A DNA stretch of 64,000 nt from Selaginella moellendorffii. Lineage: Eukaryota; Plantae; Lycopodiophyta. Numbering within the stretch: position 1 is the first letter of the stretch; each line of letters starts with the position of its first letter. Where the stretch lies: positions 1 through 64,000 of the forward strand of contig NW_003314323.1 in assembly GCF_000143415.4 (NCBI RefSeq). The letters run 5' to 3'. The notes under the pieces are model-generated. The model had not been told where the DNA came from. It ran no database searches and worked only from the letters and a program-made list of their open reading frames with translations. Positions 8,041 through 43,950 of the stretch are shown here, in pieces. The position numbers and the translations under genes are program-made.

Positions 8041-11000
8041 GGATCCTTTAGCCTACGACACCTCAAGGAGTTGGTTCCTTACAACTCCACCACCCATAGA
8101 AGAAGTTCGATGCCCACATCAAACGTCTCTTTTATCCTACGACTTGTTGACCATGTCTTCGGGGGCATCCCCCCACTTAGTGGTGTGCCTAAGTTAGCCT
8201 CCTTGGCCAAGAGCCCATGACAACGAAATATAGATGTCCCTATATCCCTCACCTCACCACGCCCTAGTATGGGGTCGGGACTTGAACCCAACCTTGCTTT
8301 ACTAGGGGGTTGGGACTTGAACCCAACCTCCGTAGAATATGTCTACGGATTCGACATCCCCGCAGGGAGTCAGGCATAGTTCCCTACACCTAATCGACCT
8401 AGCTAACCCATGCTAATTAGCTTACCTTTAGCGCGCCTTTGGGTCCCAACATGTGTCATTGCTCAACTTCACAAATTGATACTTTCATTGAACTTTGCAT
8501 AAGTACATAGAGTTATGCCTTGCAGAAATTCCTCCACTAGATCTCGCACGTTTGCTAGGTTCTCCTCCAATTCCCATGTTGCTTCGCAGTGTGGAAATCC
8601 TTTCCACTTCACATGGAACTCTCTCACTTTGCATCATTTTCACTTATTCTTGCATGCATTGAGGATGGCCTCCACTTCGTATTCTTCTTCCTCTTGGATA
8701 ACCTCAAGTAAAGGTCTTATTTGGTCCTTACGAAACGGGTCCTCAAAGTACGGCTTAAATAAGTTCACATGGAACACTGGGTGCATTTTCCCCATCTCTC
8801 AAGGAAGTCAGAGACGGTAAGCCACTTTACTAATTCGTGCCTCAATCTCGTAAAGCCCCACGAACCTGCTTAAGAAACTCAAGATCAATTCATTTATAAG
8901 AATATATGCATTTTTACCTTTGGGTCAACTTCCAGCTAATCCCACTTGGTAGCCTGAGGTTCTTAGTGTTCAACCACACCTTCTCCCTAGCTTGGAACTC
9001 TACATCCCGGCGCTTCTAGTTCGTGTACTTAGTTTGCCTTTGTTGAGCCCGTTCTAAGGAATCCCTCACTAGATTCCAAATGTTGAGCCTTTCCACCGTG
9101 AATGCCTCCACTACGGGTAACTCTCCATGATATTCGGCCATGCCAAGTTCCATAGGACCTTCAATAGCTTGCCCATTGATCACTTCCCATGGATTCACCC
9201 CGATACTCGAATGTGGTGAGTTGTTATAACACATTTTCGCAAGTCCCAAATGACTTACTCAATCGTTCTGGTCTCCCGAGACATAGCATCGCAAATAATC
9301 CTCCAGCTGCCTATTCACCCTTTCTATTTGTCCGTCTGTCAAGAAGTGTTAGTGCCATCAAACTTGACTTAATACCCAATACCTGTCTGTGGGTGATAGG
9401 CTGTGCTGAATTTCAACTTGGTGCGATACTGTTCCAGGAGAGTTCTCCAGAACCTACTGATGAAGATCTTATCTCGATCCGAGATAATCTCTTTCGGCCT
9501 TCCCCGCACTTGAACCACTTGTTCGAAGAACAGCTTTGCCACACCTTCCGCATTCACTTTCGTTGTAGTGGGTATGAAATGTGCCATCTTCGAAAATCAG
9601 TCCACCACCACGAATATCGCATCAAACCCCTCACTTGGGGGGAGTCCCGTGATGAAGTTCATCGTGAGACATTTCCACAGATGATCTGGAATTGGGATGC
9701 TTTGTAACAAGCCCCCACTAGCCTTAGTCATGACTTTGACCTGCTGACATGTTGGACATGTCTTTTACATAGTCTTGGACGTCTTTAGCCATATCTGGCC
9801 AGTGATATTTCCTCTTAAGTAAGCCCATCGTCTTGGGCACTCTGCTGTGTCCCGCAAGAGGTCCATCATGACACTTTTCTAAGGCTACCTTCCTTAGTTC
9901 CCCTTTTGGAACATACACCCTCGTTTGCTTGTAATAAATGAGTCTGTTGTGTTCCATATAGTCTGTTTTCTCTTCCGTTGGTAGCTCACCTCTTTGGTGA
10001 GCTTCCCGTGCCTCTAGATTCCTCAGCAACACTTTTTGTGCTAGACCATCATTCTCATATGCTGTCCGCACATCATCCCAAAAGGTTGTTGTCGTGCTGG
10101 ATATTACTAACTTCAAGCTCGCTTTTTGACTTAGCGCATCTACCACGATGTTGCTCTTCCCAGGCTTGTACAAAATCTCGCAATCAAACTCAGCCAACGC
10201 ATTGGCCCACCGACCCTGTTTCCCTCTCAGGTCAGGTTGTGACAACTGTTTTGTTGCCATATTGTCCGTGTAAACCTTGAAGTGTCTCCCAAGGTAGTGT
10301 CGCCACTCCTTGAGCGCCTTGACCACCGCAAACAATTCCTTCTTGTGGGTAGGCCACTTTCGTTGAGCCTTGTCCAACTTCTTCAAGAAGAACACTACTG
10401 GATGGTTGTCTTGCTTCAAAACTGCACCCAACGCAAAGTCTGAAGCATCCGTTTCTACCTCAAAGTCTTTACCAAAGTCTGGTAACGCTAACACGAGAGC
10501 CTTCCTCAACTTCCTTTTGAGGTGGACAAATGCCGCATCACATTCTGCTATCCATACCATCTTCCCTTTTCCCATTTGGTCCGTTAAGGGTAGGGCTACT
10601 CTCGAATAGTGTCTAATAAACTTTCGGTAGTAGTTGCATAGCCCCAAGAATGCTCTTAACTCGTGTACATTTGATAGTCACTCCCAATTCTGGATTGCTT
10701 GGACCTTCTTAGGGTCCACCTTGAGCCTATTCTTGCCCACCACATGCCCGAGAAACTTTACCTCTTGTTAAGCAAAGTCACATTTGCTCTCTTTAGCATA
10801 CAGCTGGTGTTCCCTTAGTTTCTCAAACACCTTTGTCAAGTGTTTGGCATGCTCCTCTAGCGTTTTGCTATAGATCAAGATGTCGTCAATATAGACGACC
10901 ACAAAGTGATCCAAATAAGGTACAAAGATGTGGTTCATCAACACTGAAAATGTTGCTGGCACATTGCATAGCCTGAAGGGCATCACCAGAAACTCAAAGC

Positions 11001-14000
11001 TCCCATACCTTGTTTGACAGGTTGTCTTCTCGACATCTTCCTTTGCTACCCTGATTTGGTAGTATCCTGACCTTAGGTCAATCCTTAAAAAGTATTTTGC
11101 CTTTCCCAACCTATCGAACAGGTCCTCAATCCTTGGAAGGGTACTTGTTCTTCTTTGTATACTTGTTAAGCAATCGTTAGTCTATGCATATGTGCATAGA
11201 TCCATCTTTCTTTTTCACAAATAACACCGACACCCTATATAGCAACTTGTCAACCTAACATACCCTTTGTCCACCAACTCCTCTAGTTGGCGCTTGAACT
11301 TCTTGAGTTCCTTTTCGTTCAAACAATAGGGGGGAAAAACCACCGCCTCAGCACCCTTGACCAGCTCAATCTTATGTTCTATCGGTCGTGTGGGGGGCAA
11401 CCCCGCTGGTAGCTCCTCCGGCATGGTATCTTGGAATTGATCCAACACCCACTGGATCACTAAAGGTACTTCTTCTGTTCCCATTTTTTTGTCACTCTTC
11501 ACCGAGAGTAAGCACAAAAATGCTACCTTGGTTCCTTTAGTGAGTTGTCCTCTCGTGGACACCAGGTTTAAGCATGAATCTTTGGCCTTGCATTGCCCTA
11601 CCTTTAGATCTTGGGCCTCCACCCTGGATCTTCTTCCTTGGGCATTCGCTAGTACCACAAGGTTCCTACCTTGTCCATACAGGGCTACCACGAACTGATT
11701 AAACCAATCCATCCCGAAGATCACATTAAATCCCGCCATGTCCAACACGGTGAAATCCATGTCTACTTTTCAAATCCTTACTTCGACTTTCGCTTGTTAA
11801 AATACCTCATCGGTGCTTTGGCTACCTTGAACAAACTCTATAGTCCTTGGTTCGCCTAGCCGCTGCACCATTAGTCTAGTTTACCAAACTATGTCTACAG
11901 CCACAAAATTATCCGAAGCACCTGTGTCAATAAGGATCTTAACAAAACTACCTCCGAGCTTCCCTCGAAGGGCTAGTAGATGTCGCGAACGACTCTATAC
12001 CAAAGTTGCTCGTGTAATGAGTAACTTTGAGCTAGAGACTGGATCACATACCTCATTTTGGATTTCATTTGACTTAATGGCCATATTGGCTCTGGCCTTC
12101 TTCGGGTAGGGACATTCCTTCGAAAAGTGTCTCGCTTCTCCACAATTGTAGCACACGTGCTGCTAACCGACTTGACCTTCTTATCTGTGGCTTTGTCTCT
12201 TTTTTCTTGACTCCCCCACGTACTTGCTTGTTGGCCACCAGATTTGCCTTTCCGGAACCCCGAAGACTCATTCTTAGAAAAACCCTTTTTGAATTTCCCT
12301 TTGCTATATGTTCCCCTTGGTTTGGCCCCTTTGCTAAATGTGGACCTCAACCCCGTCGTGTTCCCCTTTCGCAGGTTATCATTGAAATGCACCTTGATGG
12401 CCGCATCCAACACTTCTTTGTAGTTGGTCGGGTTTCAACACATCACCTCACTGAGAGCCCAAGTTTGCAAGCCTGATATGAAGGCATGGAACGCATCCAT
12501 ATCCCCCATATCCGTGACAAGTATCCTTTTTGCTATAAACCCATTCACAGACTCCTGAATGGTTCTGGTTTGCTTCAGCCTACTCAGCTCATCTCTTAGA
12601 TGCAGAGTAGCATTTGGAGGAATGTAAGTCGCACGGATCCTCGCCTTCATCATTTCCCAAGTGGCCACCGGTCCTTTGTTGGCCTCTATCATTCTCCACC
12701 AAGACTTGGCATTATTTGCTAAGTATGGTTTTGCACATGGGACCTTCTCTGAGCTCGGTAACTGCAACGCTCGGAAGTAGTCCTCCATATCATAAAACCA
12801 ATCCTCCACCACCTTATAGTCGTTCACTCCCTTGAAGACTGGTGGGGGCTTTGGTTTATACTTGGGAAATGCCTGAGGGACTGATTCCACTTCGGTCTGT
12901 TCGACTTTGTTTGGTTTTGCCTCAGTCCCTGTCGAATGATCCGCACCTTCTGCGCTACCAACATCTGCAGTCTTTTGCCTTTTCTTTTGCTTCTCGTCAC
13001 ACTTTAGGTTGCGTATGAGAGTCTCTAGCAGGGCATTGGTCTGTGCCAATTGTCCTTCTAGAATGTCCAATCGCGCCTTGGACGACCGAACCTCACCACC
13101 AAAATCCTGTTTGGAAATTTCCTCACTGAAGTCCTCCTCATGCAAGGATTCCTCATCCATAGCCTCTTGTTCAACCGGAGGCTCCAGCTCTGGAAGAGGT
13201 TCTGTCTCCGCCTTGGTTCGTTTCCGCCCTGCCTTCGCCATCTCCCAGCAATCCGCCTCTATCCTTCGCTAGAACTGAGGAAAAGGCTCTAATACCAAAT
13301 TGTAAGCCACAAATTTTTCATTTCCAATTTGCCAACTTACCTTGTCTATCCGTCCAACACTGCCTTGGCTTTTGCTAAGTTCCCTCGCCAAGGTTCCCGC
13401 CTACAGTACCAGCTCCTACTTGGTCCTACTTGGTTTCAGCTACTTACTGCACGAGCAACAGAGTGTTAGCCATCCATCCACAGATTCCTAAATCTCTCCC
13501 AATCCCCCTCCCTGGTTTAGACTGGACTTACAGTTCGGCTACACTCCCCGCAGGCACAAGCAGCCAAGCACACCAAGCCTCCAGGTTCTTAACATCCCTT
13601 TGTACCACAAGACTTGATCATGAGACCCTCTAAATCCCAAGTCTTGGGTGCAACACTTGCTTTGGGATGCCAGGGCGAAACACTGTGGCATAATGGCCCA
13701 GTATGGGTACCTCTACCCCCCCTCTTCCATCCTGAAAGGAAAGCCCAAGCCCCTAAGAAGGGCAAAGACCAATGAGTTGCAAGGTACTCAAATGGGGCAC
13801 CACTCCATATGAGCCAGGAGCACCGCAGTCGGTTTCCCTTTTGGGAGTGGGAGCTGCTCTTGAGCACTTCCTAGGGTGGCCCCTTTGGCACCACCCAAGT
13901 CCATGCTCACTCCCACCCAAGGCCTTTTGGCCCTAGTCTCAACCTCAAGTCAGTTTGGAAGCACCACTATAGAGTTCCTTCAAAATTGGTTCTTGAACCT

Positions 14001-16546: not shown

Positions 16547-17183
16547 TCTGAAGAAGTGCATGCAAGGTCTAACAGTGAAGGTGTTTTGAACATATAATGC
16601 ATCATATACTTTGAAGACATATGTGACTTTTACTTTGTCAAGGCCAAAATGATCTGACAAATTACTTGTTACAGTTGAAGGAGACGCTTGGTGCAACTCT
16701 TAACAAGAAAACTGCAGAATACTCCTGAGCAAATAAGGAGGTAAGATAACATTCTGTTTGGTTAGCACTTTGTTGACAGGTCGCACTTCCATGTAACGGA
16801 CAGTATCCAAGGGCCATAGTGCTCAGATGGAAAGATTGGAGTCAAAGATTGCAGAGTTAAAGGTCCGTTTTTCTTTATGGTTTGTTTGAGGCTGACGCTT
16901 TGCTATTGGCAGACACTGTGTGAGAAACTTGCAACAGACTTGGGGAAAGTTTAAAAGGGCAAACCTCCAGCTAAAAGGCCTCCAGTAAGTAGATGATTTT
17001 TACGTTTCTACTTTTATGATACTGACTATTCATGTAAATTCCAGGTTGGAAAAGAAGTTGGTTCAAAGCGAAGATGACCTTGGATCTGTCCTCCGTCAAA
17101 GAAGATCTCAAAACCGTGGCGCTGGGAACGTCAAAGATCAACTAACTACATGGATCCTCAAATAACGGTTGCTCATTGAGAAG
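16547..17183 (+). pseudogene. TOP1: DNA topoisomerase IB 3' gene fragment with introns (copy a)
   Basis: [36 protein letters not shown](Y); stop and frameshift present. Confidence 0.85.
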
Positions 17184-17464
17184 GTAACCAGGCACTTCGT
17201 ACTTTCATTTCTTTTATTTCTCTTACTGAGGCATGCTGTGGCAGTGGCACAAGCAGCTTTTCCAGTGACTTGACCATGGTATACCATGCTCAACTCAGGA
17301 GATTTGGATCATAGGTTTTTAATTAGTCATTGCTGGCCAAATTCGCGTCGGAGAGAAAAACTTGGAAGAAGGTGACTCCCCCCTGTCAATATAACGTCAA
17401 CACTTGCGAGACTCTATCTCAGTCTTGATGATCATGGTCTCACTGTGAGAACTGGAGGGTAACG

Positions 17465-19384
17465 TCACAGACGAGTGGAGCTGAAGTAGGATCCAGGTAG
17501 TTGCAAGCTGAAGCTTCTGGAGCTACCATCACTTGAAGGTGGTGGCAAGTCAAGAACGTCTATGTTACCTTCGAGCATATCCAGGACGTTTCTCATAGAG
17601 GGCCGGATTTCTGCCTCGAGTTGGATGCACCACAGTCCGATTTTCACGTACCTCTCAGCATCCTTGAGCTCCAAGCCACTGCTAGTGCTGGCGAGATCAT
17701 TGTCCAGGAGCTTGTCGTCAATAAGCTCGACGATGTTGCCACTGTGAAACATGCTCAGCGCGGTTTCGCCTAGGAAGCGCGGTTGTGAGGAGGAAGAGGA
17801 GGAAGAGGAGGATGGAGGATGGAACTGGATGGTGCGCTTGGAGCTGACGAGCTCGAGCAGCACAATTCCAAAGCTGTAAACGTCGGTCTTGTCCGTGACT
17901 TTGGTGTGGAGCCACTCAGGTGCCATGTATCCGGGAGTTCCTCGCATGACAGTCACCACTTGGCTCTTTCCCCGCTCGGCAAGCTTGCTCAGGCCAAAGT
18001 CGGAGATTCTGGCTCGTAAGTTCTCGTCCAGGAGGATGTTTTGAGGTTTGATATCCAGGTGAAGAACTTGCTCCCGGCATCCTTCATGGAGGTATGTGAG
18101 TCCTCGAGCAACATCTATCGCGATTGAGTGCCTCTGATTCCAGTTTAACAGCAGATTTGCTGATCCGCCACCTTTGTCATCATCGTTCTTGGTGAAGATC
18201 CACTTGTCCAGTGATCCATTGGGCATGAACTCGTAGACAAGCAATGCAGCTGGTCCCTGGATGCAAAATCCCCGGAGCTTTACCAGGTTGAAGTGGTGAA
18301 TGCTGCCAATGGACATTACCTCGGCCTTGAACTGCGAGTGTCCTTTCGACGAGCCTTGGATCTCTACGTCCATCTTCTTCACAGCAACGAGGCTCCCATC
18401 CGCAAGCTCTCCTTTGAAGACGGATCCAAATCCTCCAGCTCCAAGCGTGAGCTCGGGATCAAAGTTTCTAGTTGCCATCTTCAAGTCGTGATAGCTAAAC
18501 TGGTGCGGAAGTATCTCATCGAGCCTCATTCCTTCGATGAGCGCTTGCTTTTCCATGCGCCTCCTCCGAGATCTTCTCCACTTCCTGGTTGCTACAAAGA
18601 TTACGACGCTAAGTACCACCCCGGCCACAGCGCTTGCTACCCCAGCGATCACTCCCTCATAATTCTTTTTGCTTCGAATGGACTGTGGAAGATTACTATC
18701 AATGACATTCCAGGTGATATTTCTCAAGATTCCAATGCCTGGATCATACCCAAGCTGCCTCCACACTTGCTCGTTCGCAGCCACAGCGTTTGGAGCACAG
18801 GGCTCCGTGAACGAATGATCCCTGAGACACCCGGCTGGGGAGTAGCATTCAGCCACCATTCTAGCGACCGCAGTCCGTCCGTTTGGAGCTAAAACTTGGA
18901 TGTTTTTCGAGCACAAGCTTCGGTCTTGGGTATACCATCCAGTGGCGAGCGCTGCCATGGGTTCCATATTCCATTGCGAGGATGTGCACGGCCTGAGAGA
19001 CCCCGGATTTGAGAGGTTGAAGCTTGTGACATAGAGGACGGCATTGTTGGTCCCTTGTAAATTTGCAGAGCAGATGAAAGTCCTGTAAGCCAGGCCTGGG
19101 ACGCAGCAATTCGGGCAGTCTGGAGCGATGGTGGCATTGAAATTGACTATGGAGGTGGGCTTGCAAGTTTCGGAATCGCTGAGATATGGCTCGGATTGAT
19201 TGCTCGATAGGTAGCAGGATGAATTGCGGAGTGAACGGTTGCCGCTGAGCATGGGCTCCGGGAAACAAAGAGATCCATTCGGGCAGTCGCTTAACGAAGA
19301 ACATACCTGTTGTTGGGCTTGCGAGTGGAAGCTCCTGGTGCTACATAGCACGATCATGAAGCACATGAGAATCGACACCTCCAT
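17465..19384 (-). CDS. Kiwellin-ectodomain receptor-like kinase A (non-RD), intronless, 639 aa
   Basis: Signal peptide; kiwellin/DPBB motifs MAALATGWY...CSKNIQV...NGRTAVA...EC...GC...EPC.PN...VWRQLG; TM segment; kinase GAGGFG, VAVKK, HLDIKPQN, DFG, GTPGYMAPE. Confidence 0.92.
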   Translation of the reverse strand: MEVSILMCFMIVLCSTRSFHSQAQQQVCSSLSDCPNGSLCFPEPMLSGNRSLRNSSCYLSSNQSEPYLSDSETCKPTSIVNFNATIAPDCPNCCVPGLAYRTFICSANLQGTNNAVLYVTSFNLSNPGSLRPCTSSQWNMEPMAALATGWYTQDRSLCSKNIQVLAPNGRTAVARMVAECYSPAGCLRDHSFTEPCAPNAVAANEQVWRQLGYDPGIGILRNITWNVIDSNLPQSIRSKKNYEGVIAGVASAVAGVVLSVVIFVATRKWRRSRRRRMEKQALIEGMRLDEILPHQFSYHDLKMATRNFDPELTLGAGGFGSVFKGELADGSLVAVKKMDVEIQGSSKGHSQFKAEVMSIGSIHHFNLVKLRGFCIQGPAALLVYEFMPNGSLDKWIFTKNDDDKGGGSANLLLNWNQRHSIAIDVARGLTYLHEGCREQVLHLDIKPQNILLDENLRARISDFGLSKLAERGKSQVVTVMRGTPGYMAPEWLHTKVTDKTDVYSFGIVLLELVSSKRTIQFHPPSSSSSSSSSQPRFLGETALSMFHSGNIVELIDDKLLDNDLASTSSGLELKDAERYVKIGLWCIQLEAEIRPSMRNVLDMLEGNIDVLDLPPPSSDGSSRSFSLQLPGSYFSSTRL

Positions 19385-19606
19385 AGTTCAGTAAATACCA
19401 CTCTTCTTGGGCATCATGGAAGTGTCTCTTCGGCCCACAAATTGAAAGTTTGGCAGCTGGCTGCAGGTCAGTGTCAAGGTTTTTCTGCCCTGGCAGGACA
19501 CTAGCAGGCCTGCCTGGGTCTAGCTCCACTTGAGACGGCAAAAGACTTCAGACTTTTTCTAGAGCTTTTAAACCAGTTTACCCGCGACACGTTTGCAATT
19601 CCAGCC
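19385..19606. promoter_or_regulatory. 222-bp divergent intergenic region (putative bidirectional promoter)
   Basis: Separates the two RLK start codons; homologous copies at ~22623-22924 and ~43426-43736. Confidence 0.65.
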
Positions 19607-21403
19607 ATGGATCATCGCAGCAGCACTTTCTTCGCGCTCGCGATGATCTCACTCGTCAGCGCCACCGCGCAGCATTTCTCCTCCTCTTGCGGCACGAGAT
19701 GCGACTCTAGGCGCGATTGTTCTGGCGGCCTCGTTTGCAATCCTGTTAGCAAGACCTGCGATGGCGATCCAGGAGCTAGCACCCTTTCCTGCCCAATTCC
19801 CGGCTGCGAGCCCGCCCAGAGCTTCATCTACTCGAATGCCACCGCCCACGATCCCGAGTACTGCGTCGACAACAACACCTACCAGTTCTTCAATTGCTCG
19901 CCTAAAGAGCAGTCTCTCAACTTCGCGGCTCTCTACTACACCGAGCTGGAGGGAATCCCCACGGCATGCAATCGGTCCACGCCTTACAAGAACTCGGAGC
20001 TCCTGGCAAACATGGCCACCGGATGGTTTGCCAGTGGATCCTCGTGCTTCAAAGAGATTGTGATCACGGCAGAGAATGGGATGAGCGTCACGGCGACGGT
20101 GGTGGACATTTGTGCATCAACGATCGGGTGTAGCCCATTGACTGGATACTACGAGCCGTGCACGCCCAGATCGCTGGGAGGGACGAGAGGTGTGTGGGAA
20201 GCGCTGGGGCAGACGTATTTTGATAATGTGTTGCAAGTCACTTGGAAGTGGAAGGGCGAGGATTCGAAAAAACGCACTCTTTTCATTGCACTGGTTTCTA
20301 GTGGAGCGCTCGTTGCCTTGGCGCTCTTAGGCATTTTGTGGTGGAAGGTCGTGAGACGGTCCAATGCCGCCAAGAACAAGCTCCATCTGGGGGATCTCAC
20401 GGATGCCCCGCGGCAAATCAGGTACCAAGAGTTGTATCGAGCGACCAAGGGATTCCAGAGCAAGGTGGGAGAGGGAGGGTTTGGGACTGTGTTCAAGGGG
20501 ACGCTGCCCAGCGGAGAGATTGTGGCGGTCAAGAGGATTGGCGGTGGATCGCGGCAGGGGGACAAGCAATTTAAAGCGGAGGTGATGTCGATTGGCAGCA
20601 TCCATCACCTCAATCTCGTCAAGCTGGTTGGATTTTGCCTGCATTCTCGCCACAACTTACTCATCTACGAGTTCCTCGCCAATGGCTCGCTGGATAGATG
20701 GATTTTTGCCAAGGACAAGTATCTGCCCTGGGCAACCAGGCTTTCCATCGCGCTCGACGTCGCTCGAGGGCTTGCGTATCTCCACGATGGATGCCGCGAG
20801 AAGGTACTCCATCTAGACATCAAGCCCCAGAACATCCTCCTGGACGAGAAGATGAATGCCAAAATCGCCGACTTTGGATTCTCCAAGCTCATTGACAAGG
20901 ACAAAACTCATGTCGTGACAGTCATGCGGGGTACGGTGGGATACATGGCTCCCGAGTGGCTCCACTCTCGTGTGACGGACAAGACGGACGTCTATAGCTT
21001 TGGGATCGTCCTCCTGGAGCTCGTCTGCTGCATGAAGGCCGTGGAGTATCCCTCGGACTCACAGATGGACGTTGGGTTCCTCGCCCAGACTGCTTTCAAC
21101 AAGCTCGACAGTGGAAACGCCATGGACTTGGTGGACGATCGGCTGGTCAAAGCCGAGGACGGTGGTGGTTTATCCTTGAGTGGCTTCGAGAACATCATCC
21201 GGATCGGGCTATGGTGTGCACAGGAGGATCCTTTGCAGCGACCAACGATGTCTGTGGTGGTGAAGATGCTCGAGGGTGCCATGGATGTGTTGGCGTTCCC
21301 TCAGCTGGAGAGACCCGCTGCACAGGATTCATCGCTCCTGGTGAGCAGCAGCGAGAGCTCGGGATTGCAAATCTCCATCTCGGTCTCGGACTTGGCTCGC
21401 TAA
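19607..21403 (+). CDS. Kissper-Kiwellin-ectodomain receptor-like kinase B (non-RD), intronless, 598 aa
   Basis: Signal peptide; kissper-like CGTRCDSRRDCSGGLVC...CDGDP; kiwellin ANMATGWF..C...NGMSVTATVVDIC...GC...YEPC...VWEALG; TM segment; kinase with HLDIKPQN. Confidence 0.92.
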   Translation: MDHRSSTFFALAMISLVSATAQHFSSSCGTRCDSRRDCSGGLVCNPVSKTCDGDPGASTLSCPIPGCEPAQSFIYSNATAHDPEYCVDNNTYQFFNCSPKEQSLNFAALYYTELEGIPTACNRSTPYKNSELLANMATGWFASGSSCFKEIVITAENGMSVTATVVDICASTIGCSPLTGYYEPCTPRSLGGTRGVWEALGQTYFDNVLQVTWKWKGEDSKKRTLFIALVSSGALVALALLGILWWKVVRRSNAAKNKLHLGDLTDAPRQIRYQELYRATKGFQSKVGEGGFGTVFKGTLPSGEIVAVKRIGGGSRQGDKQFKAEVMSIGSIHHLNLVKLVGFCLHSRHNLLIYEFLANGSLDRWIFAKDKYLPWATRLSIALDVARGLAYLHDGCREKVLHLDIKPQNILLDEKMNAKIADFGFSKLIDKDKTHVVTVMRGTVGYMAPEWLHSRVTDKTDVYSFGIVLLELVCCMKAVEYPSDSQMDVGFLAQTAFNKLDSGNAMDLVDDRLVKAEDGGGLSLSGFENIIRIGLWCAQEDPLQRPTMSVVVKMLEGAMDVLAFPQLERPAAQDSSLLVSSSESSGLQISISVSDLAR

Positions 21404-21776
21404 GTAGCTTATTAACTTATTAAGCAGGTCAATCGAACGGCAATTTACATATATTTTTAGAATCCTCGATGAGAAACCAAAAGGTCTTGAGGTGGACGAT
21501 ATTCATTCAGTAGTTTATAAGCAGTTTCGATGATCTGTTTTGCTGAACTCCTCCAGATCGCCACACGGCTGCCAAACCTCACAGGAAGAATTGTAATTGT
21601 CTAAAAATCACCAACCTGCTGCTTCTCTTTCTTTTTTGCGAAAGACCAATGCTGATTTCAGAATCAGAACAATGAATTTTAATTATAGAATTCCTGCTGC
21701 TAAGAGATAAAAATAGGTGAGCTGTTTATTAGTCTCAATAGCAAACCAAATCTTATGATATGCAAGCATTTCCAAT

Positions 21777-22394
21777 CTAGCTGCCATAGTCTTGGATCTG
21801 GCAGTTCGGATCAATATTGGCATCCCATGATTCAGCATCCTGTAGCTCATGCTCAATATTATGGTAGTTACTCTCAGATCCCACGTAGAAGTCCATGTTG
21901 CATTCATTGTTCTTCTCCTTGTCTTTCTTGCAGGCATCATCCACCCGAACACATCCATTGTGTTGCCTGCCGTTGGGAAGCGCTAAGCCTTGGAGCAGAT
22001 CTATCTTGAGATGTGATCCAAAGGGATACTTCCCTTCATCTGGAACAGCAATAGACACGTAAAGCTGCAAGTCGTTCTCTCGACTGCCCTTGGGACCATC
22101 AGTCACGAAGTAGCAGGTGCAATCGTTGTCTTGACAATTCACGTAGCGCCCGTCCTTCAACCTTCCAGCACCCTCAACGTGGATTTTTGAACTGAAACCG
22201 CCACAGACGGAAGCTATCGCGTTGCCATCGCAATCCTTGATTTCTGTGTTTGAGGCCTCGTTGCCGCATAGAACACTCTCCTCTACAGTCCAGTAGTACG
22301 TGAAACTCTCTCTGGCTGCCTCCACTGAGAATCCCAGAGCCATGCAATCGAAAAAGAGCACAAGAGAAGCGGAAGATCGATGATTTTTAGCCAT
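21777..22394 (-). CDS. Secreted 3D-domain/MltA-like (DPBB) protein, intronless, 205 aa
   Basis: Signal peptide MAKNHRSSASLVLFF; FTYYW, EGAGRLKDGRYVN, YVSIAV..YPFGS.L.I..L.G..LPNGRQHNGCVRVDD, MDFYVG; TATAAAA at 22450-22456 (minus strand). Confidence 0.75.
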   Translation of the reverse strand: MAKNHRSSASLVLFFDCMALGFSVEAARESFTYYWTVEESVLCGNEASNTEIKDCDGNAIASVCGGFSSKIHVEGAGRLKDGRYVNCQDNDCTCYFVTDGPKGSRENDLQLYVSIAVPDEGKYPFGSHLKIDLLQGLALPNGRQHNGCVRVDDACKKDKEKNNECNMDFYVGSESNYHNIEHELQDAESWDANIDPNCQIQDYGS

Positions 22395-25071
22395 GAATGA
22401 ATGCAGCGCTGCTGGCTGTATAATTCTTGCATGACCTCGGAGCACTGGCTTTTATAGGAGCCAGGCATCGCCGTGCCGTGTGGTGTGTGTATACCGCGTC
22501 TGTTGTGGGACCACCGTGCAATCGTCGTCTTCACCCTCGATGTGGCCTCGTTGGTGCTCTCTGGATACGTGAAACTCTCCCCACTGAGAATCCTCGAAGA
22601 AAGTGCTGCTGCAATGATCCATGGCTGGAATTGCAAACCTCTCGCAGGTAAACTGGTTTAAAAGCTCTAGAAAGTCTTTTGCGGTCTCACGTGGAGCTAG
22701 ACTTGTCAGGCTTTTGACTAGTTCAAGCATTGCGAGGGTCCGTGGGAGGAATTGCTCTTTTAGTCTGCCGGCCCAGAAGAACCTTGACACTGAAAGATAC
22801 CTGCAGCCAGCTGCCAAACTTTAAGACTGTGGGCCGAAGAGACACTAATGAGATTTACATGATGTCCGAGTCTCTGATTTTCTATGGTTTCCAGGTGCCC
22901 AAGAACAGTGGTATTTCCTAAACTATGGAGGTGTCGATTCTCATGTGCTTCATGATCGAGCTATGTAGCACCAGGAGCTTCCACTCGCAAGCCCAACAAC
23001 AGGTATGTTCTTCGTCAAGCGACTGCCCGAATGGATCTCTTTGTTTCCCGGAGCCCATGCTCAGTAGCAACCGTTCACTCCGCAATATATCCTGCTACCT
23101 ATCGAGTAATCAATCCGAGCCATATCTCAGCGATTCAAGCTTGCAAGCCCATCTCCATAGTCAATTTCAATGCCACCATCACTCCAGACTGCCCGAATTG
23201 CTGCGTCGCAGGCTTGGCTTACAGGACTTTCACCTGCTCTCCAAATTTACAAGGGACCAACAATGCCGTCCTCTATGTCACAAGCTTCAACCTCTCAAAT
23301 CCGGGGTCTCTCAGGCCGTGCACGTCCTCGCAATGGAATATGGAACCCATGGCAGCGCTGGCCACTGGATGGTATAGCCAAGAAGCTTGTGCTCGAAAAA
23401 CATCCAAGTTTTAGCTCCAAACGGACTGACTGCGGTCGCTAGAATGGTGGCTGAATGCTACTCCCCAGGCACGTGTCTCAGGGATCATTCGTTCATGGAG
23501 CCTTGTGCTCCAAATACTATGTGAAACGAACAAGAGAGCAAATGCCCACCCTTAAGGCGTTACAGGCCATGGAATATTCTTAGATTATTTTTGTGGTTCC
23601 TATCATTTTCCCAACCCAGCCATGTACAGCAGCCTTAAGAAGTTAAATGAGCCTCACATAAAGGGAGTCCAAGGCAATACAGCCATGAAGAAAAGATGTG
23701 CAAATAGCAATACTAATGTTATAATAAATGGTCATGAAAGAAAGAAAGAAATACAGCTTTCTCACATGACAATACGTTCATGGAAACAAGAGAATGAGAA
23801 TAGAATAAATGGCTCTAATCATATAACAATACAGTTATAGAACTCAATTCTCCCCTTCCTCAGGAATGTCATCCAAGTCATAACTAAAACTCGGAAACAT
23901 TCTCTTCATGTCATTTTCAGTTTCCCATGTAGCTTCATCCATGGAATAACCATTCCACTGAATTAACAATTCCCTCCAATCTTTGAGCAAGAATATTGGC
24001 CAGACCAACCTTCTCTACATCAATCTCTGGAACTTGGATGATGGACAGATCCACGACATCACTAGAGTGCAAACATGCTTTAAGCTTGCTTACATGGAAT
24101 GTTGGATGAATTTTCGAATTAACTGGCAAGTCCAAAGTGTATGTAAGATCCCCCACACGCTGTAAAATTGTTCAAAGCTCACAATACCATAGAGACAATT
24201 TAGCACTACCACCTCCTTTCAGAGACTGTTGTGCATCTAATAGCTTAAGGAAAACCTTGTCACCAACTTTGTACTCTTAATGACGATGATGCTTATTAGC
24301 CAATCTTTTGTCTCACTCTTGAGCTTGTCTTGTGTTCAATTTTGCTAACTCAAGCTTGTTCTGCATATCCTCCAGAAAATCACAAACATAAGGTACCCAA
24401 ACCAAAGCCAAATTCAAACTCACAAAAGACCTAGGCTCATAACCATATATTGCCATAAAGGGAGACATGCTAATAATTGATTAATGAGTGCTATTGTGAG
24501 CAAACTAAAGCAAATACTTCTCCCATACTCCCTATCGAGTCAAGTTTCCCACAAAAGACTTTAACATATCTCTTAATAGCTGATTCATGCGCTCTATCTA
24601 CCCATTAGATTGTGGATACTCACCACTACTCATGCTGAGCTTAGTCTTTAGCTTCTCAAAGACCGTTTGCCAAAACTTGGATGTGAACTTAGGATCCTAA
24701 TCACTCACAATGTCACCCGACAAACTATAGAGACTGAATAACTAGTTTACAAACAACTAAGCAACTTTAGAAGCTTTTATTGTTGTCTTCATATGGAAGA
24801 AGTGAGCCATCTTCGTCAAATGATCCACAACAACCCAAATAGCATCATTTCCTCGAAAGGTTTTAAGCAAACCAATGATAAAGTCCATTGAGATGATATC
24901 CTATTTATTCTCAAGTACATGTAAAGGATGATAAAGGCCAGTGAGCTTCTGAAGATCAACTTTGACTGCTTGGCAAGTTAAACAACCATGTATGTACTTC
25001 TCAACATCTGACTTCATCCCAGGCTAAAAGAAATGCCTCTTCACCAACATATATGTTCTCAATACCCCCGA

Positions 25072-27057: not shown

Positions 27058-29354
27058 ACCCACATCATTGCCTATAATTTCCACCACAATCACCTTATCA
27101 TTCATTGACCCTTTCAGAATAATCCTTGCTCTTATATCCAGCCTTGTGGCAACGAAAAAAATTGCCCTCCACCTTGTCCTTCTCTCGCTAGTCCAAACAA
27201 AATTTCTTAGCTTCACTGCCATCTTCATGCTTTGAGCCACAATGGAACAATGGCTGTTTCTTTCCCAAATATGAAGCTTTTGCGAGCTGGTCATCATATT
27301 GACTACCCCATAAACCATCTGGTTGACTAAAGTTGACCAAATTGACTGACAGTTCAGGCAAAAAGATCTAAGCCTTAGTGATAGCATTAGTCAATGTTGC
27401 TAGAAAATCCTTCTTAACCTTCTGTTGCACATCCACAAAGCTCAATCCTTTGATGAAATATTGCACCTTTAGCAACTCATTATAGGTGCCCGTGAGACTA
27501 AGACAAAGATCACAAAACTTGCATGCATACGCATCCAAAGACAAAGTCCCTTGTTAGATCTCTAACAGCTGGTTTATGAGATCAACCTCTTTAAACTTCT
27601 TGACAAATGAAGCATGGAAAGCTTTCGTCAAATCAGTCCAAGAAGTCGACTTCGGATTAACTTTGATGTAGTTCTTCCACCACAAAGAAGCATGGCTCAT
27701 AAGCTTTGTCACAAAAAAATCTATCTTCACTTTATCCTCACAAGGATTGTAAGACTAACAACTTTCCCACAATTCTAACCAAGAATCAACTTCTTGACTA
27801 TCACAAACATCAGGTGATGATTTCCATTCTACAATACCATAATCTTTGGCATACTTAACATACCAATGGTAATCACGGACATGAGGTTGATTCAACCTTG
27901 AGGGTTCATGTGAAGCAAAAAATCCTTAATGAGATTGACAGAATCTTTAACTTCCTTTATGTTACTCTGAACCTTAGAAATCTAATATCCTTGCCGCTCA
28001 ATGACATCATCAAAAGTTTCTTCCGCATTGTCATGGCCATCATCACTAATACCATACTTCTCATCAAGATCAATATCTTGCTCACTCATCATCCCCAAAA
28101 GAACATACTACTCCAATACCAATGAAATGAACAAAGAGCGAACCTTAGGCCAACCTCCCAACCCTTAAAGCATTATCCCACAGGCCATAGAATATTCTTA
28201 AAATATTTCCATGGTTTGTGTCACTATGGCTGCGAATAAACAAGTGTGGAGGCAGCTTGGGTATGATCCAGGCATTGGAATCTTGAGAAATATCACCTGG
28301 AATGTCATTGATAGTAATCTTCCACAGTCCATTCGAAGCAAAAAGAATTATCAGGGAGTGATCGCTGGGGTAGCAAGCACTGTGGCTGGGGTGGTGCTTA
28401 GTGTTGTAATCTTCGTAGCAACCAGGAAGTGGAGAAGATCTCGGAGGAGGTGCATGGAAAAGCAAGTGCTCATCGAAGGAATGAGGCTCGACGAGATACT
28501 TCCACACCAGTTTAGCTATCACAACTTGAAGATGGCTCCTGAGCTCACGCTTGGAGCTGGAGGATTTGGATCCGTCTTCAAAGGAGAGCTTGCGGATGGG
28601 AGCCTCGTTGCTGTGAAGAAGATGGACGTAGAGATCCAAGGCTCGTCAAAAGGACACTCGCAGTTCAAGGCCGAGGTAATGTCCATTGGCAGCATTCACC
28701 ACTTCAACCTCGTAAAGCTCCGGGGATTCTGCATCCAGGGACCAGCTGCATTGCTTGTCTACGAGTTCATGCCCAATGGATCACTGGACAAGTGGATCTT
28801 CACCAAGAACGATGATGACAAAGGTGGCGGATCAGCAAATCTGCTGTTAAACTGGAATCAGAGACACTCAATCGCAATAGATGTTGCTCGAGGACTCACA
28901 TACCTCCATGAAGGATGCCGGGAGCAAGTTCTTCACCTGGATATCAAACCTCAAAACATCCTCCTGGACGAGAACTTACGGGCCAGAATCTCCGACTTTG
29001 GCCTGAGCAAGGTTGCCGAGTGGGGAAAGAGCCAAGTGGTGACTGTCATGCGAGGAACTCCCAGATACATGGCACCCAAGTGGCTCCACACCAAAGTCAC
29101 GGACAAGACCGACGTTTACAGCTTTGGAATCGTGCTGCTCGAGCTCGTCAGCTCCAGGCGCACCATCCAGTTCCATCCTCCATCCTCCTCTTCCTCCTCA
29201 TCCTCCTCACAACCGTGCTTCCTGGGCGAAACCGCGCTGAGCATGTTTCACAGTGGCAACGTCGTCAAGCTTATTGACGACAAGCTCCTGGACAATGATC
29301 TCGCCAACACTAGCAGTGGCTTGGAGCTCAAGGATGCCGAGAGGTACGTGGATA

Positions 29355-29822
29355 CTGTCTGTTGATGATTACATGGAATCGGGATCTGTCAGCAAAGTGC
29401 TAACCAAACAGAATTTTCTCTTACCTCCTTATTTGCTCAGGAGTATTCTGCAGTTTTCTTGTTAAGAGTCGCACCAAGCGTCTCCTTCAACTGTAACAAG
29501 TAAATCGTTAGATCATTTTGGCTTTGACAAAGTAAAAGTCACCTACATCTTCAAAGTATATGATGCATTATACGTTCAAAACACCTTCACTGTTAGACCT
29601 TTGCATGTACTTCTTCAGATGGGCATTAAGATTAGAAGTATCTAACTTATCAAAGAGGTCAACCCCTTCCTTTTTCCCTGTGTAACAAATAGCTCATCTC
29701 AATGAGGAAAACACAAGTCACAACATACCTTTCTTAAAATTGTGTACAGCATCATATACCTCTTTGTTTACAAGCACGGTGTTTTGGTACCTTGTGGAGT
29801 CTTTACCTAGAAAATCAAACTG
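29355..29822 (-). pseudogene. TOP1: TOP1 fragment (copy b)
   Basis: Inverted homolog of 35444-35900 (FDFLGKDS, DLFDKLDTSNLNAHLK). Confidence 0.8.
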
Positions 29823-36308: not shown

Positions 36309-36647
36309 GTAACCAGGCACTTTGTACTTTCATGTCTTTTATTTCTCTTACTGAGGCAGGAGATTTGGATCACAGGTTTTTAATAAGTCATTGCTGGCCA
36401 AATTAGCGTGGACAATGAAAGTAGAACCCAACTTCAGATTTTGTGAGGCTGATGGTGGTGCGGAAGAAGACCCTTGATTCTTTGAAATATATATTGTCTC
36501 CGGTATGCTTCCTCGTTCCCACTGGCTAGAAGTAGAGAGAAAAACTTGGAAGAAGGTGACTCCCCTCTGTCAATATAACGTCAACACTTGCGAGACTCTA
36601 TCTCAGTCTTGATATCATGGTCTCACTGTGAGAACTAGAGGATAACA

Positions 36648-39600
36648 TCACGGACGAGTGGAGCTGAAGTAGGATCCAGGTAGTTGCAAGCTGAAGCTTC
36701 TGGAGTTACCATCACTTGAAGGTGGTGGCATCAAGAACGTCGATGTTACCTTCGAGCATATCCAGGACGTTTCTCATAGAGGGGCGGATTGCTGCCTCGA
36801 GTTGGATGCACCACAGTCCGATTTTCACGTACCTCTTGGCATCCTTGAGCTCCAAGCCACTGCTAGTGCTGGCGAGATCATTGTCCAGGAGCTTGTTGTC
36901 AATAAGCTCGATGACGTTGCCACTGTGAAACATGCTCAGCGCAGTTTCACCCAGGAAGCGCGGTTGTGAGGAGGATGAGGAGGAAGAGGAGGATGGAGGA
37001 TGGAACTGGATGGTGCGCTTGGAGCTGACGAGCTCGAGCAGCACGATTCCAAAGCTGTAAACGTGACTTTGGTGTGGAGCCACTCGGGTGCCATGTATCC
37101 GGGAGTTCCTCGCATGACAGTCACCACTTGGCTCTTTCCCCACTCGGCGAGCTTGCTCAGGCCAAAGTCGGAGATTCTGGCTCGTAAGTTCTCGTCCAGG
37201 AGGATGTTTTGAGGTTTGATATCCAGGTGAAGAACTTGCTTCCGGCATCCTTCATGGAGGTATGTGAGTCCTCGAGCAACATCTATCGCGATTGAGTGTC
37301 TCTGGTTCCAGTTTAACAGCAGATTTGCTGATCCGCCACCTTTGTCATCATCGTTCTTGGTGAAGATCCACTTGTCCAGTGATCCATTGGGCATGAACTC
37401 GTAGACAAGCAATGCAGCTGGTCCCTGGATGCAGAATCCCCGGAGCTTTACGAGGTTGAAGTGGTGAATGCTGCCAATGGACATTACCTCGGCCTTGAAC
37501 TGCGAGTGCCCTTTTGACGAGCCTTGGATCTTTACGTCCATCTTCTTGACAGCAACGAGGCTCCCATCCGCAAGCTCTCCTTTGAAGACGGATCCAAATC
37601 CTCCAGCTCCAAGCGTGAGCTCGGGATCAAAGTTTCTAGTTGCCATCTTCAAGTCGTGATAGCTAAACTGGTGTGGAAGTATCTCATCGAGCCTCATTCC
37701 TTCGATGAGCGCTTGCTTTTCCATGCGCCTCCTCCGAGATCTTCTCCACTTCCTGGTTGCTACGAAGATTACGACGCTAAGCACCACCCTGGCCACAGTG
37801 CTTGCTACCCCAGCGATCACTCCCTCATAATTCTTTTTGCTTCGAATGGACAAGATTACTATGTCTCATTCCAGGTGATATTTCTCAAGCTGGATCATAC
37901 CCAAGCTTCCTCCACACTTGCTCGTTCGCAGCCACAGCGTTTGGAGCACAGGGCTCCGTGAACGAATGATCGCTGAGACACCCGTTTGGGGAGTAGCATT
38001 CAGCCACCATTCTAGCGACCACAGTCCGTCTGTTTGGAGCTAAAACTTGGATGTTTTTCAAGCACAAGCTTCGGTCTTGGCTATACCTGTTAGGCGCCAG
38101 CTTTGACTACGTGGTCAACGTCGGTCAAAGGGAGGCTCAAGCGTATATTAAGGCATGTTAGGGTAAGGGACTTAACCTACCCTAGGGCTCACAGTGGAGC
38201 GGCGGTGCAGTGGAGCTTTTGAGGTAGCTCGGGGGTGGTTGGGTGGTGAGGAACCTCAAGAGGTGGCGTAGCATAGTCTAGGGCAACTAGATCTTTGTCT
38301 TTTTGCGCCGGATCATAACATTGGTATCAGAGCATTGGTTGCGATGGCCGACCAAGCTGAACGCTGCAATCCTATTGTCGATGGTGGTGCCGACGAAGCT
38401 GTGGAGATTTGGACCATTCAAGATGTGGTTCATGAGCTGCGAGCCCTTAATAAAAATTAGCAAGAGATGCAAGACAAGATGCATGGCATGATGGATACCA
38501 TGCGTGGGCGTGTTGAGGCACTCGAGGCTGGACGGGGTAGCGCTCCAAGTAAGCCTTCTTTGGTAGATCGACTCAAGATTCCAACCTTTTCCGGTGATGG
38601 TGGTGTGGACGAGTGTCTCGCTTGGCTAGCTAATGTGAAGAAGTTCTTGGCTGCTAGAGGAACTCCAGATGCAGAGGCTTTAGTGGCTATTCCGATGGTT
38701 TTGCGTGATGCGGATCTTCGATGGTGGAATTGGCTTGAGGAGTCCCGTGTTGCGGATAAGAAACCACCAGTGTCTACCATGGATGAGTTTGAGGCTGCTT
38801 TCCGTTTACGTTTTGCCCCTCATTACGACGTGGAGAATGCTCGTACGGAACTTTGACATTTCCAGCAAGGGAAAATGACGCTCGGGGACTATATTGAGAA
38901 GCTTACTCACTTGATTAGTCGTGTTCCAACGAAGGATCCAGATCAAAACAAGTCCTACTTCATTGATGGCCTACATAGTGAGAGCATGCGGCAACCCTTG
39001 CGTCATTCTCAGCCTACAAAGAGTTTGGAGGAGCTCTTTGATGCGGCTCGTCGACTTGACAATGACAAGCACAAGTCTCGCAAGCGTTCGCGGAGTCCTT
39101 CTATCGAGAATCGTCGTGATGATCGCCGTGGACACAAGGATGGGAACAAGCATCACAAGTTGAAGTCGGTGGTGACTACTTCAGATGCAAAGGGGTCCAA
39201 GAAGCAGAAGTTCTTTATGAAGAATTATAGACAGGGTTGTCATCATTGCGGCGAACTTGGACACTACAAGGCTGATTGTCCGCAGTTGAAGAACAAGCAG
39301 CAGGACAAGAAGAATGGCCAATCTTCTTCTCACGGTAAGTCCGATACTAAAAAGTTGCAAACTTTGCAGCGTGAGGATGAGGAGAACGACCATTCCGGTC
39401 GGAGGAAGAGACTTTCGATCGTTGCTCGTCAGCTCAACTGTGTGTGGAACAAGATGGAGCTCGAGGATACGCGTGAATCAGCTTTAATGCTGGAGGGCGT
39501 GTTCCGTGGCGATCCAGTGCGGAGTTTACTGGATAGTGGGAGCGATGACAACTTTGTTTCGGCAAAGTTTGTTGCGGAGCATGGCCTGGTCACACGTGGA

Positions 39601-42600: not shown

Positions 42601-43425
42601 GGTGTACTATCTCGGAGTGATGGGCCCAATGCCTCCTTGATGTATACGGCTGTGGAAGATGGACTAGGAGCTTGAGCAGGATTCCCCAGAAAGGGTGATC
42701 ACCAGTACAACTCGTCCTTGGGACAAGGACTTTGTTGGGTTGTTAGGCTCCAGCTTTGACTACGTGGTCAACGTCGGTCAAAGGGAGGCTCAAGGGTATA
42801 TTAAGGCATGTTAGGGTAAGGGACTTAACCTACCCTAGGGCTCACAGTGGAGCGGCGGCGCAGTGGAGCTTTTGAGGTAGCTCGGGGGTGGTTAGGTGGT
42901 GAGGAACCTCAAGAGGTGGCGTAGCATAGTCTAGGGCAACTAGATCTTTGTCTTTTTGCACTGGATCATAACAATACCATCCAGTGGCCAGCGCTGCCAT
43001 GGGTTCCATATTCCATTCCGAGTACGTACACGGCCTGAGAGACCTCGGATTTGAGAGGTTGAAGCTTGTGACATAGAGGACGGCATTGTTGGTCCCTTGT
43101 AAATTTGGAGAGCAGGTGAAAGTCCTGTAAGCCAAGCCTGGGATGCAGCAATTCGGGAAGTCTGGAGCGATGGTGGCATTGAAATTAACGCTGGAGATGG
43201 GCTTGCAAGCTTCGGAATCGCTGAGATATGGCTCGGATTGATTGCTCGATAGGTAGCAGGATGAATTGCGGAGTGAACGGTTGCCGCTGAGCATGGGCTC
43301 CGGGAAACAAAGAGATCCATTCGGGCAGTCGCTTAACGAAGAACATACCTGTTGTTGGGCTTGCGAGTGGAGCTCCTGGTGCTACATAGCACGATCATGA
43401 AGCACATGAGAATCGACACCTCCAT
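36648..43425 (-). pseudogene. RLK-A copy 3: split by an LTR element and frameshifted
   Basis: 36648-38087 and 42974-43425 are colinear with RLK-A, with small frameshifting deletions. Confidence 0.92.
38088..42973 (+). mobile_element. Full-length Ty3/gypsy LTR retrotransposon, no chromodomain seen
   Basis: 233-bp LTRs 38088-38320 and 42741-42973 (6 mismatches by eye); TSD ATACC; PBS TGGTATCAGAGC; gag CHHCGELGHYKADC, protease LLDSGS, RT FLDD, RNase H, INT with GPY; single frame broken by 4 stops; PPT partly deleted. Confidence 0.97.
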
Positions 43426-43950
43426 AGTTTGGTAAATACCACTGTTCTTGGGCACCTGGAAACCATAGAAAATCAGAGACTCTGACATCATGTAAATCTC
43501 ATTAGTGTCTCTTCGGCCCACAGACTTAAAGTTTGGCAGCTGGCTGCAGGTATCTTTCAGTGTCAAGGTTTTTCTGGGCTGGCAGAATAAAAGAGCAATT
43601 CCTCCAACGGACCCTCGCAATGCTTTAACGAGTCAAAAGCCTGCCAAGTCTAGCTCCACATGAGACCGCAAAAGACTTCAGACTTTTTCTAGAGCTTTCA
43701 AACCAGTTTACCCGCGAGAGGTTTGCAATTCCAGCCATGGATCATCGCAGCAGCACTTTCTTCGTGGATTCTCAGTGGAGACAGCCAGAGAGAGTTTCAC
43801 GTATCCAGAGGAACGAGGCGAAGACGATGGGTGGTCCCACAACAGACGCGGTATACACACACCACATGGCACGGCGATGCATGGCTCCTATAAAAGCTAG
43901 TGCTCCGAGGTCATGCAATAATTATATAGCCAGCAGCGCTGCATTCATTC

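Follow-up and report, generated by a model that had tools for sequence, protein, structure and literature searches.

Two Head-to-Head Receptor Kinases with Kiwellin Ectodomains in Selaginella moellendorffii

Considering that kiwellins are familiar as free proteins of the apoplast, and that two maize members neutralize a fungal effector, what does a kiwellin do when it is fused to a receptor kinase? This question is raised by a locus of the lycophyte Selaginella moellendorffii, where two receptor-like kinase (RLK) genes with kiwellin ectodomains, here called RLK-A and RLK-B, stand head-to-head. They lie within positions 1 to 64,000 of contig NW_003314323.1 (assembly GCF_000143415.4); this whole stretch of 64,000 nucleotides is referred to as the window. 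We concluded, with a probability of about 0.7, that both are functional divergent genes for type-I receptor kinases in which kiwellin is the ligand-binding module, and that A and B probably act together.

Two Intact Genes with Kiwellin Ectodomains

An earlier note, made from the letters of the window, had described two intact and mutually divergent RLKs 222 bp apart, each with a kissper-like cysteine segment and a kiwellin double-psi beta-barrel (DPBB) ectodomain. The layout was borne out. When the open reading frames (ORFs) of the window were checked, RLK-A (639 aa) and RLK-B (598 aa) each ran from ATG to stop in a single exon without an internal stop; their start codons were separated by 222 bp in divergent, head-to-head orientation, and no ORF of comparable length was found in the other frames across this region (table 1). 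The two products were 41.7% identical over 607 aligned residues. The exact RLK-B sequence was present in NCBI nr and EukProt. Identity to other S. moellendorffii proteins reached 79% for RLK-B (P0001) and 94% for RLK-A (P0020). The exact 639-aa product of RLK-A was absent from the searched protein collection, and it may be unannotated or modeled differently in databases. The names automatically given to kiwellin-RLKs in databases are misleading, including “G-type lectin S-receptor-like kinase SD2-5”, “PERK10”, and “At5g20050”. Each protein contains one hydrophobic helix followed by basic residues, and therefore hydropathy points to a topology with the kiwellin part outside the cell and the kinase inside.

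The kiwellin assignment was obtained in several ways. The Pfam family KWL1 (PF24300), whose curated cut-off is 27 bits, matched RLK-A with 81.1 bits and RLK-B with 70.6 bits. A profile built from nine fused ectodomains and searched against the PDB matched maize KWL1 (6FPG), KWL1-b (6TI2), and kiwifruit kiwellin (4PMK, 4X9U) with E values of 1e-42 to 1e-47, and this search gave no meaningful match besides the solved kiwellins. The AlphaFold2 model of the RLK-B ectodomain, based on a 50-sequence alignment, was confident (predicted local distance difference test score, pLDDT, 90.0; predicted template-modeling score, pTM, 0.84), and Foldseek placed it on solved kiwellins of the 6FPG/4PMK type with target-normalized template-modeling (TM) scores of 0.84-0.90 and root-mean-square deviations of 1.6-2.8 Å. 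The RLK-A model was weaker (9-sequence alignment; pLDDT 68.6; TM scores 0.61-0.68), and its best Foldseek matches were likewise solved kiwellins. For both models the structural neighbors ranking after kiwellins were expansins, loosenin, cerato-platanin, and GH45 enzymes, far behind in the case of RLK-B. The conserved cysteine framework of kiwellins was also kept in both. Thus, the two ectodomains are kiwellins by sequence and by fold, as the earlier note had proposed. They are not kiwellins in the sense of small free secreted proteins with no other domain, being fused to a transmembrane helix and a kinase. A word-indexed search with the RLK-B ectodomain returned four close S. moellendorffii relatives only.

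An N-terminal kissper domain marks the Kissper-Kwl1 subgroup of kiwellins, and the kissper claim held fully for one gene. The N-terminus of RLK-B aligned residue for residue with 4PMK, including the kissper part (chain residues 2-187). In RLK-A the corresponding segment is kissper-like by cysteine spacing, which is similar with an insertion, and phmmer gave no alignment of it to kissper.

The same reading had described in RLK-A the replacement of two conserved kiwellin aspartates. These replacements were correct (MVAEC for VVDEC; AVAAN for IVDAS), and loss is not limited to RLK-A: RLK-B keeps the first aspartate (VVDIC) and has also lost the second (SLGGT). Among 99 representatives of free-kiwellin length, the first position (VVDEC) was aspartate in 91 and the second (IVDAS/IVDGS) in 69. 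In contrast, the second was aspartate in none of 12 kinase-fused ectodomains (8 from Selaginella and 4 from eudicots, representing two independent fusion lineages), and the first had been lost among fused ectodomains only in one A-type subclade and one B copy. The loss of the second aspartate across fused copies is suggestive; it is not statistically strong, as only two independent fusion lineages contribute to it.

Kiwellin on the SD2-5 Kinase Clade

Both kinase domains were recognized by Pfam Pkinase (148 bits for RLK-A, 158 bits for RLK-B), and the Gly loop, VAVK, HLD-IKPQN, DFG, and APE motifs were all intact. Judging from these motifs, the kinases are complete, non-RD, and apparently active. 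No B_lectin, S_locus, or PAN match was obtained with Pfam in either protein. In the kinase tree, the kiwellin-RLKs fell inside the SD2-5 clade of Selaginella, Marchantia, and angiosperms (support 100/99* against CRK and malectin RLK outgroups). The Selaginella kiwellin-RLK kinases formed one clade beside Selaginella and Marchantia G-lectin kinases, within the HLD clade. Phylogenetically, the kiwellin ectodomain was shown to have replaced the usual G-lectin ectodomain of the SD2-5 kinase clade within the Selaginella lineage.

The motif HLD[IV]KPxN was found in all 28 SD2-5 ingroup kinases, regardless of ectodomain (G-lectin, thaumatin, GH18, LRR, SPARK, or kiwellin), and the three outgroup CRK/malectin kinases with a match in the motif search had HRD. 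Because the whole SD2-5/SD-2b clade has HLD, the motif was inherited and is not gene-specific, and the non-RD state was rejected as a special feature of RLK-A and RLK-B. The rule linking non-RD kinases to pattern-recognition receptors is a statistical association. The suggestion that the non-RD kinases point to such receptors was right about the motif, present in both genes, and argues only weakly for the role, since the motif came with the clade.

Other ectodomains were also observed on HLD/SD2-5 kinases, namely thaumatin (P0341, P0364), GH18 (P0329), LRR (P0293, P0302, P0303), and SPARK (P0352). From these sequences, the SD2-5 clade seems to be a promiscuous chassis on which ectodomains are swapped, two further pathogenesis-related folds (thaumatin and GH18) being among them.

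How common is the fusion? When 1.84 billion representatives were searched exhaustively with a profile, 539 kiwellin-domain proteins were recovered, and among the best 150 of these, kinase fusions occurred only in Selaginella and one eudicot group. A search of the ESM Atlas with P0037 gave generic kinase clusters only, with no kiwellin+kinase cluster of at least 50 members. As far as such sequence surveys indicate, the fusion is rare. The eudicot group included a Cuscuta campestris protein (P0281, 586 aa) and the transcripts P0037, P0040, P0282, and P0283, the kiwellin part of which was 92% identical to a kiwellin of the cactus Carnegiea gigantea. These transcripts are the nearest relatives of the gene of Cuscuta, a parasitic plant, and the resemblance may reflect either common eudicot ancestry or gene transfer from host to parasite. 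A single ancient origin of all kiwellin-RLKs was rejected, the approximately unbiased (AU) test excluding one clade with p = 5e-67. From this result and the nesting of the eudicot kinases within the angiosperm SD2-5 clade, it follows that kiwellin was joined to SD2-5 kinases at least twice. By the same phylogenetic evidence, the architecture is not confined to the Selaginella lineage and has a separate eudicot origin.

No description of a kiwellin-kinase fusion was found in the full-text literature searched, which did not include subscription-only papers. The kiwellin family review counts 61 larger proteins with a kiwellin part and assigns the oldest members of the family to bryophytes and lycophytes; the word “kinase” is absent from its text and from its searched supplements. 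The kiwellin-kinase design is undescribed in searchable papers, while the reuse of pathogenesis-related protein folds as RLK ectodomains (PR5K) is already known. Two further kiwellin-domain proteins were listed under organisms outside land plants: a two-domain kiwellin-like protein of the zygnematophyte Closterium sp. NIES-65 (P0127, 280 aa; E 1.6e-67 against the ectodomain profile), and a chytrid protein of Siphonaria sp. JEL0065 (P0242, 1106 aa) combining KWL1 with CAP/PR-1 and alginate-lyase domains, which is flagged UNVERIFIED_CONTAM and may be an assembly or contamination artifact.

Recurrence, Selection, and Expression of the A/B Unit

Is the pairing more than chance adjacency, as had been supposed? 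Head-to-head A/B units were found at three further loci (L002, L003, and L004, assembly GCA_000143415.2), and their phylogeny was mirrored. In the maximum likelihood tree, the A-types of the four loci grouped together (100/99*), as did their B-types (92/94), and the branching order of the loci was identical in both, with L004 outermost. Because the two clades mirror each other by locus, the A/B split preceded the block-wise copying of the unit. An early inverted duplication was thus shown to have given rise to A-type and B-type, and the unit, with a spacer of 222-291 bp, to have been block-copied to at least four loci. Over 4.2 kb, from A through the spacer to B, the window and L003 were collinear at 90.6%. 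Moreover, synonymous divergence (dS) between the L004 pair and the other loci was saturated, so the arrangement is old; both L004 ORFs and the short spacer were nonetheless kept. The supposition of more than chance adjacency was supported by this recurrence. At L002, a second unit has lost its A partner.

Selection was estimated by pairwise Nei-Gojobori comparisons of close paralogues of both types. The ratio of nonsynonymous to synonymous substitution (dN/dS) was 0.13-0.19 in the kinase and 0.33-0.47 in the kiwellin domain, for A-types and B-types alike. Purifying selection thus acts on both RLK-A and RLK-B; in both types the ectodomain has changed some 2.5-3 times faster than the kinase, and no domain-wide positive selection was seen in either domain by these pairwise ratios.

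Expression was approached through contigs from four probable RNA runs of four studies (24-37 Mb each) over positions 17000-22700. RLK-B was covered (19616-21557) with 0-1 differences, and A-type sequence was covered at 97.7-99.2% identity together with reference-identical pieces; a neighboring 222-aa ORF was covered in three of the four runs. Cover was almost zero in the spacer and past 22347. This pattern fits transcripts and not genomic DNA.

The surroundings of the pair are less orderly. Two degenerate units in the window, about 96% identical to each other, have both kept the spacer plus 28 nt from the start of B, while the remainder of B has been deleted and the A-type is broken. One of them carries a Ty3/gypsy retrotransposon, the 233-nt long terminal repeats (LTRs) of which are 97% identical. 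A third LTR-like copy (87%) was observed at 33556-33788, and other retroelement ORFs (gag, reverse transcriptase-RNaseH, and integrase) flank the cluster at 9724-13241 and 51315-54653. The receptor genes thus sit in a transposon-rich DNA cluster. The 222-aa ORF accompanies the unit at 21777-22445 (-) and 43900-44524 (+) of the window and at 6738-7376 (-) of L003. It has a signal-peptide-like start, its copies share 85% and 79% amino acid identity, and no Pfam match was obtained at E <= 0.1. At L003 the ORF is found downstream of B, with both on one strand, while in the window it is part of the adjacent inverted degenerate unit.

Table 1. Features of the kiwellin receptor kinase genes, of related copies in the window, and of comparison loci (RT, reverse transcriptase; SP, signal peptide; TM, transmembrane)
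Feature	Position	Strand	Remarks
RLK-A gene, A-type kiwellin receptor kinase, single exon	17465..19384	(-)	intact ORF; KWL1 + Pkinase
RLK-A SP, residues 1-24, approximate	19313..19384	(-)	hydrophobic N-terminal stretch
RLK-A kissper-like Cys-rich segment	19214..19303	(-)	C28, C34, C40, C57; Cys spacing
RLK-A kiwellin DPBB domain, residues 74-227	18704..19165	(-)	MVAEC 18845-18859, AVAAN 18773-18787; Pfam, profile, model
RLK-A TM helix, residues 244-266	18587..18655	(-)	followed by Arg/Lys stop-transfer stretch; top hydropathy 19-mer, 2.62
RLK-A kinase domain, residues 301-609	17558..18484	(-)	HLD at 18053-18061
Divergent spacer, 222 bp, candidate bidirectional promoter	19385..19606	(.)	B-proximal ~60 bp conserved in window, L002, L003; almost zero contig cover 19403-19550
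RLK-B gene, B-type kiwellin receptor kinase, single exon	19607..21403	(+)	intact ORF; KWL1 + Pkinase
RLK-B SP, residues 1-21, approximate	19607..19669	(+)	hydrophobic N-terminus
RLK-B kissper domain, residues 26-62	19682..19792	(+)	six Cys; alignment to 4PMK/4X9U kissper part from chain residue 2
RLK-B kiwellin DPBB domain, residues 67-215	19805..20251	(+)	VVDIC 20099-20113, SLGGT 20171-20185; Pfam, profile, model
RLK-B TM helix, residues 225-246	20279..20344	(+)	followed by basic residues; hydropathy 2.52
RLK-B kinase domain, residues 276-560	20432..21286	(+)	HLD at 20810-20818
Degenerate inverted unit copy: first ~28 nt of B, spacer, frameshifted N-terminal part of A-type	22595..23521	(+)	84% to 18789-19634; tblastn; inverted repeats I8, I9
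Partial A-type copy, aa 201-580, TM + kinase	28224..29350	(+)	384-aa ORF 28211-29365
3' part of further A-type copy, aa ~146-638, frameshifted, LTR retrotransposon-interrupted	36535..38087	(-)	95% to 17351-18936
Ty3/gypsy LTR retrotransposon in A-type paralogue at ~codon 146-154	38088-42973		gag-protease, RT-RNaseH, integrase ORFs; LTRs 38088-38320, 42741-42973
5' part of that interrupted A-type copy + spacer + first ~28 nt of B	42974..43764	(-)	84% to 18932-19634
L002 unit	scaffold GL377575		A-type 646 aa intact; B-type 612 aa intact; spacer 291 bp
L002 second unit, A-type fragment	619-890	(-)	faces B2
L002 second unit, B-type B2, 588 aa	1585-3351	(+)	intact
L003 unit	scaffold GL377594		A-type 635 aa intact; B-type split over three frames; spacer 290 bp
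L004 unit	scaffold GL377634		A-type 630 aa intact; B-type 589 aa intact; spacer 240 bp

Proposed Function and Comparison with Known Systems

What might the pair do? We propose that the kiwellin domain would act solely as a ligand-binding module, because no fused copy has retained the second conserved aspartate. As maize KWL1 binds Cmu1, a chorismate mutase secreted by the fungus Ustilago, the ectodomain would by analogy most likely recognize a secreted microbial protein, and binding of this ligand would activate the kinase. A and B would be transcribed from a shared bidirectional promoter in the spacer and would work together, either as a hetero-oligomer or as sensor and co-receptor.

Several points weigh against this proposal, and most of them suit the view that A and B are independent receptors, their head-to-head order being the leftover of one inverted tandem duplication that was spread by segmental duplications, without meaningful co-regulation or a complex. 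Block duplication by itself would hold adjacent genes together, and whole-block copying is evident both in the 4.2 kb shared with L003 and in the degenerate copies that retain the spacer and the start of B. Intact singletons stand next to broken partners (the L003 A beside a frameshifted B; the L002 B2 beside an A fragment), so the pair is not obviously obligate. The Cuscuta homologue (L005, OOIL02002078.1, 10001-12030) is single, with no paired partner within 10 kb, and head-to-head pairing is so far Selaginella-specific. Complex prediction with the kiwellin domains (A 74-227, B 67-215) gave no answer (score 0.00, controls not run), which lends the complex no support and is not evidence against binding. 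The contigs carry no strand, level, or co-regulation information, and the status of the runs as RNA rests on a guess together with the cover pattern, three raw RNA-seq runs of this species being on record besides; in most A-type contigs, moreover, 1-2% of sites do not agree with the window copy. Neither the broken A copies of the window nor L003 are a likely source of these variants, as at most half of the variant bases matched any copy, and they probably come from an allele outside the compared copies. Nevertheless, the arrangement has outlasted synonymous saturation between L004 and the rest with its ORFs intact and its spacer at 240 bp, both genes are intact in three of the four full units, and A is also broken in both degenerate window units in which B was deleted. 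We therefore consider independent receptors a possible but doubtful explanation.

The nature of the ligand is a separate matter. Some DPBB relatives, among them expansins and loosenins, bind glycans of the wall, and so the ligand could be something other than a protein. A kiwellin ectodomain tuned to cell-wall glycans of plant or microbial origin, working as a sensor of wall integrity or damage and not as a receptor for a pathogen effector protein, is a serious rival by structural analogy, even if we think it unlikely. All of the next structural neighbors (expansins, loosenin, cerato-platanin, GH45) are glycan-binding DPBB proteins, and the ancestral partners of the SD2-5 kinase clade are G-type lectin domains. 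However, the only solved kiwellin complexes are those with the fungal protein Cmu1 (6FPG, 6TI2). The lost second aspartate, moreover, is one that we take to align with the aspartate of the HFD motif of expansins and GH45 enzymes, presumably needed for wall activity. Far less credible is that, in this transposon-rich cluster, at least one of the ORFs is a pseudogene copy in decay that yields no functional receptor. The window does hold several broken A-type copies, one of them with an LTR retrotransposon inside, and the exact RLK-A protein is missing from the protein collection; yet the two ORFs are full-length with every catalytic motif, kinase dN/dS is low, contig cover is confined to the ORFs, and public databases carry an annotated protein identical to RLK-B. 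At the other extreme is a bolder claim, in which kiwellin is a true recognition module wired twice to the SD2-5 chassis and the Selaginella A/B pair is an obligate two-component surface immune receptor for a secreted pathogen protein; we regard it as distinctly improbable. Our preferred reading remains that of two functional kiwellin receptor kinases whose products probably act together.

Among known proteins, maize KWL1/KWL1-b and kiwifruit kiwellin resemble RLK-A and RLK-B in domain family, fold, and cysteine framework, and RLK-B also shares the kissper part. They are secreted in free form and measure about 190 aa, whereas kiwellin is tethered to a transmembrane helix and a kinase in RLK-A and RLK-B, and unlike typical kiwellins both have lost the second conserved aspartate, RLK-A having lost the first as well. 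The SD2-5/SD-2b G-type lectin receptor kinases share the clade, the HLD motif, and 46-54% kinase identity with RLK-A and RLK-B, but they have a B_lectin/S-locus/PAN ectodomain in the place of kiwellin. The eudicot kiwellin-kinases show the same architecture of KWL1, transmembrane helix, and HLD kinase, and the second aspartate is likewise gone; they differ from the Selaginella genes in their independent origin, and the Cuscuta gene differs from A/B in being unpaired. The closest functional analogues are the thaumatin/PR-5-like receptor kinases (PR5Ks), for example AtPR5K2 (PMC6822995), and the chitinase-like RLKs. They follow the same logic, a secreted pathogenesis-related fold being reused as an RLK ectodomain, although the fold itself differs from kiwellin. 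We know of no PR5Ks in conserved head-to-head A/B pairs.

Such pairs are familiar from sensor and helper nucleotide-binding leucine-rich repeat receptors (NLRs), of which RGA4/RGA5 and RRS1/RPS4 are head-to-head examples. As in Selaginella A/B, these genes are divergent, share a short spacer, and consist of two anciently diverged partner types copied together. The Selaginella pair differs in encoding cell-surface RLKs and in that both partners carry the “integrated” kiwellin domain. That kiwellin was tethered to a kinase twice independently, and both times within one kinase clade, suggests an ability of plants to convert an effector-binding protein into a cell-surface sensor, which would extend the integrated-decoy idea of NLRs to RLKs. 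With its conserved A/B pair, Selaginella, an early-diverging vascular plant, offers a concrete case in which a possible two-component RLK can be tested. If the bolder claim were true, the A/B unit would correspond, at the cell surface, to the paired NLRs that carry integrated decoys.

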